From: Podarcis filfolensis
Taxonomy: Eukaryota
Assembly: GCA_964270895.1 (NCBI GenBank)
Contig: OZ185453.1
Reading direction: 5' to 3' (one strand)
Length of the DNA: 64,000 bases
Part shown: positions 3,125 to 16,295 of the stretch, in pieces
How the letters are laid out: the number at the start of each line of letters is the position of its first letter
Position numbering within the stretch: position 1 is the stretch's first letter
Program-made: the position numbers and the translations under genes
The notes under the pieces: generated by a model
The model's database searches: none
What the model was told of the DNA's origin: nothing
Seen by the model: the letters and a program-made list of their open reading frames with translations, nothing else

Positions 3125-3200
3125 TTCTAAAGGGCCATACTGCAACATAGCTTTCCCTAGGGTGTTATTTGTCAACAGTTTTATCTCTTTGTGTTTTCAG

Positions 3201-4045
3201 ACCATATAAAGGAGAGTACCAAAGAAGATCACCCCCAGGATTGTCCACAGGCTGTGGAAAATCTCAGCAGCCAGCACAGAACGATCCCCTCTTCCAGCTC
3301 AAATGAGCTAAGTGACAGTATGGTATCTGAACCCCAAACATCGGAAACTGAGCAGTCAGCAATTCCTCACCAAGTGGAAGGCAGCATGGATAAGCTGCTG
3401 TCTGCCACTGCTGGTGACAATTATGATGTTACTGCTTCCGATTCTTCTGCTTGGCCAGAGTCTTTAGAGGCAGAGACCCAGGCTGACGAAACTCACTTAT
3501 CTTCATATACACCCCACCCAACATCTGGCATTGCGGAGCAAAGTATGCCCACTGAGGCCTTTGTGCCCAGACCAACCACCTGCCACATCCCGACCACTGA
3601 GGAAGCAGATAACACGATGAGCACAGAACAGGCCAGTGCTTTGGCTCAGACCCCTGGACAAGAAGGCGCCCCCTTCGCATCCAATCTGGAGTCAGACAGC
3701 GAGGGCCCCCCTAAGATGGACTTTGTCGACAACAACATCAAAACTCTGGATGAGAAGCTGCGGACGCTTCTGTATCAGGAACACAGCTTGTCGGGCACTT
3801 CCCCTGAGAGCCAGAAAGATACACAAAGTGCCGTGGAGTCTCCATTTTCCTCGTCTGCTGAAGAAACTCTTCCTGGCCCAGTTCTTGATGCACCAGACTC
3901 CCCCCAAGAGACCCAGCAAAGCCCCACCAAGCTTTCAGACCCCCAGGCTATGCTGATTCCATCTGCAAGTCATCCAGACAGTTTGCCAGTGCTGAGGAGG
4001 GAGCCCAGTGCTATCACCTCTGCTCCCAGTGATCTCTGTATGCAT
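3201..4045 (+). CDS. WNK3: WNK3 large internal coding exon (Ser/Thr/Pro/Glu-rich, with conserved [20 protein letters not shown])
   Basis: Acceptor ttttcag at 3200, donor CAT|gtgagt at 4045. Phase 1 in, phase 0 out. [13 protein letters not shown] is a WNK-family block. The preceding exons lie outside the window. Confidence 0.88.
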
Positions 4046-4544
4046 GTGAGTACTGACAGGGAGATTGGCTGGGGTTGAAATCTTTTCTTCCTGCAACAAG
4101 AAATCTATAGCTATGCTAGATGGCTGTACAAACCCATTTGCTAGCTTAATGGGTGCTGGCAAGTGAGAGGTAAGTTTCCTTTTCAGGCATATTATCCCAA
4201 CATTTTGTCCTGGTTCAGTGCTTGATGAATAGCTGGTAGCTGGGAGTTATCAGTGCTGGGAGATGCACAGGGTGGGAGTTAGATGAAATTTTTACAGCAA
4301 CAGTTTGCCTATATTAATACAGAACTGAACTTTACTAGGCCCTACTTGGGCTAAGAATTGGAAATGTCCTATTTGGAGAAAGGCATTGTAAAATTGTTGA
4401 GCAGTTACATATAACCTCCTAATCTGTCATTGGCTATTTTAACCTGACAAATTGATCTTTTTAAAAAATAGGCACTTCATTGAGCTTGGAGATTTGAATG
4501 TGCAACCCTCAGCAAGAAAGCAATCTCTAAAACAGAGATAGCTA

Positions 4545-10047: not shown

Positions 10048-12107
10048 GTAAGGGCACTAAAATGGGGCCTTGTAACATATTCATCAAGGTTCTCATTATA
10101 GCAAGGGACCGAAATGTGGAAAGGGTGGAGCAGAGTAAGACTTTCTTTGTGCTCCATTACATTCATTTTTTGATTTTGAAGTTAGATAATATCACAAAGC
10201 TTTGGTAAGTCTGGGTCTGCTACTTCCAAATGATTCTGCCACTATTTAGCAAGCCAGATTGGATGGCTATTTGATGAAGGAATTCTCAGGTGATCTGTCA
10301 TACAACCAATCAATGTAACTGAATCTACATAAATTTTCATATGAAGGAAACTAATTCTGAAGGGGGGAATCGTTATTTCTTCTTCTTTTTAGATTATGTA
10401 TAATTGCATCATAGTAGTCTTAATCTTAGAAGTGGCCTTCCCTTCTGGGTGAGAGAAGGAGCAGTGCCTCTTCTAAGAAGGAACTTTCAGTCACAGAGTT
10501 GTAAGTACTTACCTTACAAATAATTACCTTACAAAATATTTTGCCTGGTTAGCAAAGGGCAGCTTTTTAATCAAGAAAAAAAGTTAATTAATACATCAGT
10601 CTAGGTGAATCTATTAAACACTGCAGCCCTTACTATAGATGTGTGATGTATTAAGTAGAAGTAGGGCAGAGCAACCTTATCCTCTAGTACCCTAGGGAGA
10701 CAGGGAAGCTTTTGTCATATCCAACCCTTGCCCATCACAGAAGGTGGGTGGGGGACACATGGCTCTGAAAAGAGTAGGGTGGAGCAGCAGCAGCTCCACC
10801 CCCAGCAGCCATGGCAACGCCACCTGCACTTGAACATTTAATTGTGGCCAATGTGGCGAAGTCACGGAAATGCCCTATGGCCACCAGACAGAGCCAACTG
10901 ACTCATGCTGACATCGAGGCACCCCTGCTACACCCCTGCCCCACCCCTCGCAACACGCAATCTGCCAAATATACAATGATGTCCCAGCACCTTCTGCTGT
11001 GTGAGTGGCCAAGAGCCGCAGGCATCCCTGAGTCCAGTTCCTCTTACACTGCACACTGCTGACAAGTACTGTTTTTCTTCACAACACAAAAGAAAGGAAA
11101 GAGAAGCCATATAACACAACATCCGAACTGCTGCCTTGGGAGAATGCCTGCAAAGGGACGAGAATTCAAGGCCACCAAAGGAGAAAAAGAGCATTTTGCC
11201 ACTTGGGGAAAGGGAAGGAGCAGAATAGGCCCAAGAGGGGCCACAGCCACACATTGACAGTAGCAGCCTGCAGTAACTCGCAGTGTAGGGAACATGGTTG
11301 GGAAACGAGAGATGCAAGAGCAAGCCCCAACAAGGGGAATATGACCCCCATGCACTTTTAGTATGCCTGAGCCAGCAATAGTCATCACAGAGGCAAAAGA
11401 CAGGGAGCTCGTGCACATGAACCCACACTGGAGACGCCACAGAACAGTTCCCTAACTATTTAGCCATAGCAGCAAACAGGAAACAGATACCTTATGGGAC
11501 ATTTGCTTCCCTCAGTTTCAAGACATATGCTGGATTGAGACACGTCAAAGAAGCGATTCAGTTAAACGCGTTGCAAACTCATACAGGGAAATCCGGTAGG
11601 GAAAGACAGGACTCCACAGCGCCATCTGGTGTCACAGTGTCAGATTGCATATACAACGCATATAAAATGCTTTTTCTTTACCAGTCTAGCTGAGTCCATA
11701 GTCATATATACCAGGAACATATGGGCTGCAGGAGAAACCTCTCGCCTGTGGAGCAGCTTAAGTTACAAATGCTGTGTGTTCCAGGTCTCAATAAAAAGTA
11801 CAATCCAATGCTACAAATGGGGGGGGGCAGACTTAGGAACTGCTGAGCCAATTGGGAGGAGCCCTGCATGGGCCAAGAAGTCCTTTTGGCCCACCCCTCC
11901 CACAGCAACCCATGTGGGTGAGGAGAAGGTAAAGGAGCTCCTAACCCTGAGCCTTGGCACAAAAAAGTCTCTGCCTGTTCCCTGGGCTGAAAGTCTCACA
12001 GCTGGTCCATCACTCTTTGCCTGCGTCTAGTGGCTGCTGAGGTGGGTATTGAGTAAGCCAGGGCTTGGCCTTGTCTTAAGGCTTTGTTCTCTTCCTCTTC
12101 TGTGTAG

Positions 12108-12319
12108 ACACATTCAGGAGGTAGTGAACCTTCAGGCTCAACAGAACAGGGAGCTGCAGGAGTTGTATGAGCGGCTGCGTTCCATCAAAGATAGCAGGTC
12201 AGAATCCTCTGACATCTCCCTGCAACTGTCGTCTCCACGCCGGCCCAAGTCTTTCAAAAGCAAGCTGCGTAGCAGGCCACAGTCTCTGTCGCATGTTGAC
12301 AATGGCATTGTCGCTCCCG
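12108..12319 (+). CDS. WNK3: WNK3 coding exon, C-terminal coiled coil with HQ motif ([23 protein letters not shown])
   Basis: Acceptor tgtgtag at 12107, donor G|gtaaga at 12319. Phases 2/1. Confidence 0.95.
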
Positions 12320-12741
12320 GTAAGAGATGGGAGTGGGAGGTGGTTCAGAATATGGGTGCCGGTGTAGGGAATTGTCAAAGCTGAAGGGTTCCTTAATGTA
12401 GAAGAAAAGTCCAAAGTTCACGAATGCATGAAAGAGTCCGGTTCACAAAATAAGTTTTCCTTTCCACTTTGCATTCTTTGCCATGGGAATTCTATATTAT
12501 TTCCTTGTTGACTCATTACACGTGATGTAGTAGAAGTCTAGAGAGCTTCCCCATTGCCACTTTCCTTTGTTATGTTTTGCCCTGGTGAGCTGAACTTTTC
12601 AAAAATCTCTTGACAAGAGTCACTAGTTGGGTGCCCAAATCCCTTGGATACAGATCCATTCATTTGTCATCTCCATTCCCACCCCATAGTTTTGTTACCT
12701 CTAATCTTGTGCCTCCCCCCCAACTTTCCTTCGCCTTACAG

Positions 12742-12843
12742 AATGCTGTTGTGCTACCACTGCTGCCTCTGTGATAGACTATCAGTTGAGCATTCAGGCC
12801 CATTTGCTGCACCAGAGCTGTTCACAAGCAGAGACTAGCCAAG
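12742..12843 (+). CDS. WNK3: Candidate WNK3 in-frame cassette exon, 34 codons (ECCCATTAASVIDYQLSIQAHLLHQSCSQAETSQ)
   Basis: Branch point CTAAT 12701-12705, AG-free pyrimidine tract, cttacag acceptor, AAG|gtattt donor. 102 nt, phase 1/1, no stops. No transcript evidence. Confidence 0.55.
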
Positions 12844-13031
12844 GTATTTGCACATTCCATTCTTCTCTTCTGAAATGCCAATGCTTTATATTTAATATCT
12901 TCCTGTTGGTAGATGACACCACCACTCCATTGTAGGTCCATCTGTGGATTACAGATGTATATTTTGCAGACTAATAATTTTAATATCTCTGCAACTTCAC
13001 CATGCAAACAGAATCTGATAGCTAGCATTGT

Positions 13032-13032
<1 letters not shown>

Positions 13033-13107
<75 letters not shown>

Positions 13108-13114
13108 AGAGAAA
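13033..13114. repeat. Compound (GT)n(GA)n microsatellite
   Basis: About 15 GT units then about 19 GA units, decaying into GAAA. Confidence 0.97.
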
Positions 13115-13904
13115 GGGTGTGTAAAAACAAGTTTCTAGCTGCCATGACTGAGAGGTGATTCATATTTTATATAGTGCTTTTGGTACACCAGTATTTGCCG
13201 TAAACATCTAGAGTTTGGAAAGGGGATACATACTTCAGTACATGTTGTAGAGGCATTGCAGGAGATTGCAAACTTCTGTGGCTTCCAATCTTCTAGTGTT
13301 TGGGGGATGCACCTCTTTCCACTTCACTTGTTTCTGCTCATCCTGTCAATGTAGTGTTGATGCTGTGTAAATGGTGAAGCTGAGAATCTGGGAAATAAGA
13401 AAGCAGTAACACAGGCTAAACCTTTAAAACACATTTTTCTTCTCAAAAAAATCTCAGCTTGTTTAATGGCTGCTGTCAATTGTCAGGGGTAAACTACAGA
13501 GTCAGAATTATTTGAGGGGGCGAAATGTGCTTTAAAGGTTTAATGTATTCAGAAGCCCTGAAACTGGAGCCTGTGGGCAAACCTTCCCACCACTGGGTAG
13601 GACTGACCTACCTAGCTCCCTCTTTCACAACCAGCTACCATTTCCTGCTCTAAACGATGGCCAGGCCACCTAACCTAAATCCCCTCGTTTTTCTCTCCCC
13701 CTGCTCCTCCTGTCATTGATTTAAAAGCAAATCTAAATTAAACGGCAACCTACATTTGGAGATAAAATAAGCTTATATATGCAAATCTGTTGAAGTGGCA
13801 AGGCTTACTCAGAGCGCAAATCTGATTTTCTTTGCTACGGAAATATGTACTTTTTGAAGTTCAGCAGCACGGTCCTGCCTCTCATGATCGCTCTTCCCCT
13901 TGCC

Positions 13905-14475
13905 CAGTGGCATCACATGGGTAGGGCCAGAGGGGCAGTGTCCTCGAGTGCATTGGGGCAGGCATTTTGCTCTTCACCGTCCTGCCAGCCCAGCGCCGCT
14001 TTGCGATGCTGCAGGACTGTGGGAGGAAGACGCAACAGACAGGTGCCCTTCCCTGTTCGGGGTGCATGCCTGTTGCATCCTCCTCATGCCAGGGGCGAAC
14101 GAAGGCGTGTGACACCTGGGGCAGGGCGTCGCTATGTAGGGTGCATGTGCGGCGTCGCTTTGTATGATGCATGCGCTGCACGTAGTGACACCGCACATAC
14201 GCTGTACATAGTTGTTTGTCAGCGGCGTCGCTCCAGCACCATATGGACGGTACCGGGATCCTCTGCTTGTGGCTGCAGTTGCGAACAGAAGATCCTCTAC
14301 ACGTGTTACGTACAGCGCATGCATGCGACGCTGCACATATGCTGTACATAGCGGTTTGCTGCCCACACCGGAATCCTCTGCTCGCAGCTGCAGCAGAGGC
14401 ACCTGCGGGGTGCCTTCTTGTCACCCCCTCGACATGGCACCTGGGGCCCACCGCCCCCCTGTTGCGACGCCACTG
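13905..14475. mobile_element. CpG-rich non-autonomous DNA-transposon-like element (hAT-like ends) with internal duplication
   Basis: CAGTGGCATCAC at 13905 vs GCGACGCCACTG ending at 14475 (10/12 inverted match). Diverged direct repeat of about 140-nt period. No TSD found. Confidence 0.4.
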
Positions 14476-14814
14476 CTTCACGCAGCACTGCAGCATCGCT
14501 AAGCGGCGCAGAGCTGGAAGGCAGAGTGCACCCTTAGGGTATATGTGCGTTGCACCCTCCAAGGGCTGCAGGTGGCAGGGGTGCAGCGCAGCCCCACTTG
14601 GTGGCAGGGGGAGGTCACTCCAGCGACACTAGTGGTGTGGACTGGGTGAGGGTTCTCTTCACCCCCCCCCACGCACGCTCCACTCCACTCACACCAGCCA
14701 CACAATCTACGCTGCTGCCCTCCGTTGTGGGAAGAGACCCAATCAGCACATCCCATTTTTACGGATTGTTTCTGCATTCTGTAATGTGCTTTAAAATATT
14801 TCCCACGCCCTTAG

Positions 14815-15017
14815 ACCAGCTCTGCATCGTCAGCAGCACTGCTTCTTGTCAGCAGACGACGGCCAGTAAGAAAGGGATGTTCACAGATGACTTGCACAAA
14901 CTGGTGGACGACTGGACAAAAGAAAAGGTGGGGAACTCCCTTATCAAGCCAAGTCTCAACCAGATCAAACAGAACAAGCATCGGCTGGACTCCGACAGCT
15001 GGAGCAAAGTATATGAG
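14815..15017 (+). CDS. WNK3: WNK3 penultimate coding exon (SKKGMFTDDLHKLVDDWTKE..GNSLIKPSLNQIKQ)
   Basis: Acceptor cccttag at 14814, donor GAG|gtgagg at 15017. Hallmark WNK C-terminal motif. Confidence 0.96.
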
Positions 15018-15199
15018 GTGAGGGGGGTGGGATTTCATAAAACAAAGTTCACAAGGGTGAGCTTGTGCAAGCTGAGATACCTTAGCTGTTGTCCTGCTGG
15101 GGGTGACCTTGCTCCCCACCCCCACTTAATCATTTTCACAACCCAGGCATTATGGGGAGGCACCTGTTTTTCTGGAGTCCATGTGAACTCAGGATTGTC

Positions 15200-15965: not shown

Positions 15966-16295
15966 ACGACAACATCTACAGTGGGCTACACGTCCACATG
16001 GATTTCCTCGCTTTCCCAGATCCGAGGGACCGTACCAGCTGCTTTGCCTCAAGGACTTCCCCTGTCCCCCTTTACCGGCACACTATCGCCATATGGAGTA
16101 CCCCACGTATGCCAGTATAACACCATGACAGGGACAACTTACCCAGTGCAATGGGTGGGCATTTCAGGGACAGCCCAGCAGTCTGTTGTTGTCCCTGCCC
16201 AGCCTGTGGGACCATTTCAGCCAGGGATAAGCATGCCAGCCTTTCCAGCATCACCTGTGCAAAACCCAGCTCCCATCCCCCCAAGTCCCAAATGA
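15966..16295 (+). CDS. WNK3: WNK3 last coding exon ([15 protein letters not shown]...[16 protein letters not shown]...PPSPK*)
   Basis: Acceptor ttttaaag at 15965, phase 0, TGA at 16293-16295. Matches the WNK3-specific C-terminus. Confidence 0.96.

Follow-up and report, generated by a model that had tools for sequence, protein, structure and literature searches.

The WNK3 locus

The window (the whole stretch of Podarcis filfolensis DNA that was analyzed, 64 kb in length) contains the 3' part of WNK3 on the plus strand, with exons at ~3191-4078, ending at 10051, and at 12108-12319, 14815-15017 and ~16000-16295; FAM120C follows WNK3 from ~28157. A 2007-aa database protein (P0022), in which WNK3 N- and C-terminal sequence matching the alligator model P0021 is followed by FAM120C-like sequence, looks like a fused gene model, in agreement with the adjacency of the two genes in the window.

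Between the WNK3 exon that ends at 12319 (...GCTCCCG/gtaagag, phase 1) and the one that starts at 14815 (cttag/ACCAG, phase 1) lies a 102-nt stretch (12742-12843, plus strand) that is open throughout and fits phase 1/phase 1 between its neighbors. Its translation is E-CCCATTAASVIDYQLSIQAHLLHQSCSQAETSQ, a peptide of 34 residues. The product of the upstream exon (12108..12319) is 100% identical to residues 2411-2480 of Podarcis muralis WNK3. RNA contigs of three runs (X1, X4 and X10, from organisms A, B and D respectively) and the contigs of one DNA run (X23, organism A) were mapped on 12042-15041; the three RNA sources are closely related to the window's own species, organism E (0.93 of words as DNA), but are not that species. 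The features of the region are as follows.

12108..12319, plus strand: upstream WNK3 exon (C-terminal coiled coil; approximately human exon 21), phase-1 end; RNA contigs cover 12108-12318 in X1, X4 and X10
12656..12687, plus strand: YCAY cluster, six tetramers in 32 nt, 55-86 nt 5' of the acceptor
12701..12705, plus strand: candidate branch point CTAAT, with the A at 12704, 37 nt 5' of the AG; use inferred from sequence
12706..12741, plus strand: AG-free pyrimidine tract and CAG acceptor; joint 12318>12741, cut +1 = 12319>12742, in X1 and X4
12742..12843, plus strand: WNK3 coding exon E-CCCATTAASVIDYQLSIQAHLLHQSCSQAETSQ; RNA contigs (three organisms), annotated proteins, 102-nt orthologs in four other genomes, dN/dS
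12844..12849, plus strand: donor GTATTT; joint 12841>14813, cut +2 = 12843>14815, in X1, X4 and X10
14815..15017, plus strand: downstream WNK3 exon (DQLCIVSS...KKGMFTDDLHKLVDDW...; approximately human exon 23); RNA contigs cover 14813-15017, then the last exon

The YCAY tetramers, CTAAT, AG-free tract, CAG, 102-nt frame and AAG/GTATTT donor that the initial annotation had described all lie exactly where it placed them. No AG occurs between CTAAT (12701-12705) and the acceptor, whose CAG ends at 12741. The branch-point motif reads CTAAT in Zootoca and CTAAC in the aligned gecko sequence. The donor AAG/GTATTT lacks both +4A and +5G and is sub-optimal, a property common to all species compared; its GTA is kept in all five genomes.

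Two other elements were noted in the intron downstream of the 102-nt stretch. The segment 13980-14520 is a GC-rich repeat whose inverted arms measure 49 nt and which contains direct repeats internally. DNA contigs of organism A reach a word depth of ~1100 over it, RNA contigs derived from other places match it in X4 and X10, and a high-copy mobile element is its probable identity. A compound (GT)n(GA)n microsatellite occupies 13035-13100, and reads appear to be cut there.

Splicing in related lizards

Spliced RNA places the 102-nt stretch in mature WNK3 transcripts. A single 1892-nt contig of X1 (organism A; depth 41.3) carries 12108-12318, 12741-12841 and 14813-15017 in order, the same three WNK3 exons stand in the same order on a 1017-nt contig of X4 (organism B), and a 484-nt contig of X10 (organism D) joins the 102-nt exon to downstream exon 23. 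All joints are GT..AG, with ambiguities of 1 and 2 bases, and correspond to 12319>12742 (X1 and X4) and 12843>14815 (X1, X4 and X10). Both junctions had been predicted from the genomic letters of the window, and spliced contigs of three related lizards now contain them. At their loose ends, the contigs run into the preceding exon (...KVELQRLREK) and the last exon (TTTSTVGY...), i.e. exons 20 and 24; past 15017, the loose end is ACGACAACATCT..., which encodes TTTSTVGY. In the RNA contigs, depth in the exon bin equals that of the flanking exons, and intron bins are at ~0.

The exon is also more uniform than its surroundings among these close relatives. In the 422-nt upstream intron, organism A DNA (X23) differs by 14 substitutions and four insertions; the exon itself shows none, and the sole RNA difference within the exon, 12797 G>A, is synonymous.

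A separate 214-nt RNA contig of X1, at a depth of 2.3, joins intronic 12337-12390 to 13233-13389, bypassing the exon through a joint without GT..AG. This contig could represent a chimera, a deletion allele or another transcript.

Genomic conservation and selection

Orthologous loci were compared in Zootoca, Chelydra, Gekko japonicus and Tachyglossus, these four being the genomes in which synteny from exon 21 to exon 23 was checked. A 102-nt exon lies between exon 21 and exon 23 in each of them, with AG/GT kept and free of stops. Amino-acid identity to the lizard peptide is 97% in the gecko, 88% in echidna and 77% in the turtle (over 26 residues). Relative to the flanking exons, identity is clearly higher in echidna, approximately that of exon 23 in the gecko, and between the two in the turtle. 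Between the window and Gekko, the exon has a dN of 0.013 and a dS of 0.36 (dN/dS ~0.04), compared to a dN of 0.032 and dS of 0.73 for exon 21 and a dN of 0.026 and dS of 0.36 for exon 23. Ortholog and dN/dS comparisons had been proposed as a check on the exon, and they bear it out: splice sites and frame are kept in four other genomes, and the low ratio shows strong purifying selection on the encoded protein. Synonymous divergence of the exon equals that of exon 23 (dS 0.36 each), with no extra synonymous constraint. Outside squamates, DNA conservation ends at the exon edges; the flanks align among squamates only.

The simplest alternative, that 12742-12843 is a chance open frame with splice-like motifs and hence an unused pseudo-exon, has next to no probability. 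It was rejected given the spliced contigs in three organisms, the conservation across species and the low dN/dS.

Turtle sequences show two local peculiarities. In Chelydra serpentina (L002 16415-16506), the last ~32 nt of the exon, together with the donor, are tandemly duplicated just downstream, and the second GT, ~32 nt on, is out of frame. In Chrysemys isoform P0239, the exon that follows the 102-nt exon is read out of frame.

Presence in existing gene models

Homologs were collected by searching the upstream exon against 1.84 billion representatives, combined with a region search using the Zootoca WNK3 C-terminus. In RefSeq, UniProt and GenBank models of WNK3, the sequence E-CCC[AT]TTA[AE]S.IDYQLS[IL]QA[HR]LLHQ... 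sits between the coiled-coil exon and KKGMFTDDLHKLV. Lacertid carriers are Podarcis muralis (every isoform seen that reaches the C-terminus), P. raffonei, P. lilfordi and Zootoca vivipara. Other squamate carriers comprise Rhineura, Elgaria, Sceloporus, Phrynosoma, two Anolis, Candoia, Erythrolamprus, Thamnophis, Naja, Hemicordylus, Lerista, Sphaerodactylus, Eublepharis and Gekko kuhli. Beyond squamates, the exon is carried by at least 12 turtles, by platypus and echidna, and by the salamanders Pleurodeles, Lissotriton and Ambystoma. A second search with a 281-aa C-terminal piece returned 13 matches, none of them lacertid; the only new carriers among them were Gekko kuhli and Naja naja. Models without the exon are those of Xenopus, Phyllobates, Microcaecilia, Alligator, emu, marsupials, placentals, lungfish and bichir.

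The 102-nt stretch is a genuine WNK3 coding exon that is already present in public gene models. The initial annotation had presented it as undescribed, a claim that does not hold, as RefSeq has the same 34 residues in models from this genus and from dozens of further species; it is not a discovery in the sense claimed, since the exon is already part of what automated annotation produces for many species.

A small number of models within carrier groups skip the exon, namely those of Protobothrops (P0109), Gekko japonicus (P0112), Euleptes (P0118) and the UniProt platypus entry (P0135), and these could be real isoforms. The Gekko japonicus genome contains the exon intact despite the RefSeq model P0112 (locus L003 85449-85550; 97% amino-acid identity; AG/GT kept), so the omission of the exon from this model probably reflects a shortcut in annotation. 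The Protobothrops and Euleptes models are likely annotation omissions as well. For annotation purposes, it is worth recording that the models of these three squamates omit an exon which the Gekko genome retains.

Constitutive or regulated splicing

The initial annotation regarded the exon as a cassette under NOVA-dependent skipping. In its full form, this reading holds that the exon is regulated and is skipped in neurons through the binding of NOVA to the upstream YCAY cluster; we consider it quite improbable. The cluster itself is real, with tetramers starting at 12656, 12660, 12667, 12673, 12679 and 12684. The 100 nt upstream of the exon contain six YCAY in the window, which ranks in the top 1.75% of 100-nt windows, and eight in Zootoca (top 0.05%). 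The cluster was picked post hoc, six in 100 nt being uncommon but not unique, and at least six YCAY within 32 nt occur at three places on the plus strand of the 64 kb. It is kept in organism A DNA, with a 3-nt insertion. Echidna likewise has six YCAY in its upstream 100 nt (top 1.5%), though these fall in a T-rich tract that is non-alignable with the lizard sequence. Counts in Gekko (two) and Chelydra (one) are at background, and the gecko sequence aligned to the lacertid cluster retains YCA without the fourth pyrimidine. Hence, the window does have a YCAY cluster within ~200 nt of a splice site, but it is conserved in lacertids only and not in distant orthologs. Nor do the surroundings of the exon bear the marks of conserved regulation: the flanking introns are unconserved beyond squamates, and synonymous divergence is not below that of exon 23.

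Transcripts point in the same direction. A skipping joint, 12319>14815, is absent among the joints listed for the three RNA runs, in assembled contigs, which drop rare variants, and exon depth equals that of the flanks. In X10, the exon-21 contig and the contig of the 102-nt exon break at their junction, which may mark a second splice path and would fit regulated skipping, as would the weak donor, the database models that skip the exon, and the alternative splicing of the paralogous slot in human WNK3 and WNK1. Against these stands the fact that, of the cluster members extending to the C-terminus (RefSeq isoforms along with further database entries), all 70 include the exon; they are drawn from Podarcis, Sphaerodactylus, sea turtles, Chrysemys, Anolis and platypus. 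The sole pair of models with and without the exon from the same species is that of platypus, where the RefSeq model has it and the UniProt/Ensembl entry P0135, the product of a different pipeline, does not. The exon is apparently constitutive. The term 'cassette' is not supported for an exon with no listed skipping joint and full inclusion among the clustered isoforms that reach the C-terminus, and NOVA-dependent skipping finds neither such a joint nor a YCAY cluster conserved outside lacertids.

Inserts at the same slot in mammals and in WNK1

The position between the coiled-coil exon and the next one is occupied by different sequences in different lineages. At this junction, the 1800-aa WNK3 proteins of human and apes contain GKSCLINELE(N), which the 1790- and 1743-aa forms lack, confirming the earlier statement that human WNK3 has a 10-aa optional exon in the same slot. 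This human exon 22 is reportedly brain-associated, a statement attributed to Holden (2004) and Glover (2009). Among the papers searched, none links WNK3 with its exon 22. Walrus WNK3 has a related GKLCVLSEIT at the slot, and in the New World monkeys Sapajus and Aotus (P0122, P0123 and P0126) it contains an Alu-like 31-aa insert (EMGSPYVAQAGLQLL...SQSAGIT). Homology of human exon 22 to the lizard exon was rejected, there being no similarity between them.

WNK1-like proteins have inserts of variable length at the slot. As the initial annotation stated, optional exons 26a and 26b of WNK1 do exist: together with exon 26, they are small in-frame alternative exons between exons 25 and 27, and neural tissue and skeletal muscle are the only sites of exons 26a and 26b (Vidal-Petiot et al. 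2012, PMC3365125). A homolog of the lizard exon in other WNK paralogs was also rejected, with neither DYQL nor CCC at the slot in any of the non-WNK3 or unassigned homology matches.

The idea of a variable slot, filled in this lizard by a different exon, survives in part. Unrelated inserts do occur across lineages, as proposed; the lizard exon is not one more of them, being instead the ancient tetrapod state. Given that the mammalian and WNK1 inserts bear no resemblance to the lizard exon, the latter is, on sequence comparison, the old state of the slot, and the mammalian inserts are later and unrelated.

Age of the exon and its losses

The same exon is found in turtles, monotremes and salamanders, and so dates at least to the tetrapod ancestor. 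A search for relics in the introns between the orthologous exons of Alligator and Xenopus laevis found none, with the best local protein score equal to the shuffled null; the gecko intron, used as a control, scores 175. No relic in these two genomes, combined with presence in turtles and salamanders, shows that the exon was lost in archosaurs and in frogs. Absence in therians is read from gene models and not from DNA.

It is very improbable, by the same comparisons, that the exon is a new lizard- or squamate-specific one filling a paralog-wide variable slot. The slot does carry different, unrelated inserts across lineages, as such an origin would have it. However, turtles, monotremes and salamanders have an exon of 77-88% amino-acid identity in the corresponding position, and its absence from Alligator and Xenopus is complete, with no relic at all, meaning loss. 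Lizard or squamate novelty is refuted by the turtle, monotreme and salamander orthologs.

With its splicing, conservation, purifying selection and prior annotation documented, we assign a probability of roughly 0.88 to the reading that 12742-12843 is an ordinary, functional, apparently constitutive WNK3 exon, orthologous to an ancient tetrapod exon annotated in squamates, turtles, monotremes and salamanders. It is, as the distribution of its orthologs indicates, the lizard representative of an old exon lost in archosaurs and frogs, and not a lizard novelty. Going by gene models, it is also missing in therians, where the slot later gained unrelated optional exons.

The lungfish Protopterus annectens has ...TTCITTAEESICC... 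at the slot of its WNK3 (P0051). It may be a short stretch homologous to CCCATTAES, the start of the tetrapod exon, and the origin would then go back to sarcopterygians.

The phylogenetic pattern is that of a conserved WNK3 exon in salamanders, lepidosaurs, turtles and monotremes that is missing from bird and therian models. The remaining interest lies in a WNK3 exon that is tightly conserved and yet was lost repeatedly, in several lineages, with human and Xenopus among the species checked that are without it.

The encoded peptide

A 24-residue core of the peptide is near-invariant (CCCxTTAxSxIDYQLSxQAxLLHQ), and its CCC is invariant in every species with the exon. The 34 residues lengthen the C-terminal tail of WNK3; 38 residues separate them from the preceding coiled coil and 28 from the conserved MFTDDLHKLVDDW helix that follows. 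In an AlphaFold model of the C-terminal 294 aa, the coiled coil (residues 2-45) is predicted at pLDDT >90 and confidence is mostly low elsewhere; a helix is placed over the conserved AASVIDYQLSIQAHLLHQ at a pLDDT of only ~46-56. The best 18-mer of the peptide has a helical hydrophobic moment of 0.22, a value reached by 31% of shuffles. An amphipathic helix was rejected, the moment being no higher than that of shuffled sequences, and a membrane-surface helix is consequently unlikely. Of the elements of an S-acylated membrane anchor, the conserved cysteine cluster is present, and an adjacent amphipathic or hydrophobic membrane element is absent by prediction.

The invariant CCC and AASVIDYQLSIQAHLLHQ may form a functional unit of the C-terminal regulatory tail. 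The best guess would be a protein-contact helix accompanied by a possibly acylated or redox-sensitive cysteine cluster; the initial annotation had suggested that the CCC could be a palmitoylation or redox site. A more specific proposal is that the exon encodes an ancestral tetrapod module, consisting of the invariant CCC and a conserved 20-residue helix between the oligomerizing coiled coil and the FTDDLHKLVDDW motif, that alters WNK3 localization or partner binding, for example through S-acylation of the CCC; we regard this as tentative and rather unlikely. Wherever it is retained, the module is under strong constraint; it is missing from the laboratory species checked (human and Xenopus), which may account for no study of it having been found. 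Should the CCC-helix peptide have a defined biochemical role, an account of WNK3 function built on mammals would miss part of it in most other tetrapods.

Comparison with known systems

In the RNA map of Ule et al. from 2006, a YCAY cluster upstream of an exon is said to predict skipping. The WNK3 exon resembles NOVA-regulated exons in having a dense YCAY cluster on its 5' side, near the branch point. It differs from them in that the lizard cluster is not conserved past lacertids and no skipping is seen; the resemblance is one of sequence.

Human WNK3 exon 22 shares with the lizard exon its slot between the coiled-coil exon and the KKGMFTDDLHKLV exon, phase 1/phase 1 boundaries and a length that is a multiple of three. 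In contrast, the human exon (GKSCLINELE; 10 aa, 30 nt) is unrelated in sequence to the 102-nt lizard exon, and it is optional in primates, whereas the lizard exon looks constitutive. The WNK1 exons belong to a different paralog and are demonstrably alternative; their positional equivalence to the WNK3 slot is the placement made in the initial annotation.

The closest known counterparts are the annotated WNK3 proteins of Podarcis muralis (XP_077777766.1 and isoforms X1-X37), P. raffonei (XP_053227395.1), Zootoca vivipara and Ornithorhynchus (XP_028922818.1), which have the same exon at the same position. Relative to P. muralis, P. raffonei and P. lilfordi, the window shows one flanking-residue difference each and otherwise no substantive difference. 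Podarcis and Zootoca have the identical peptide, and other annotated WNK3 models retain 76-97% identity to it.
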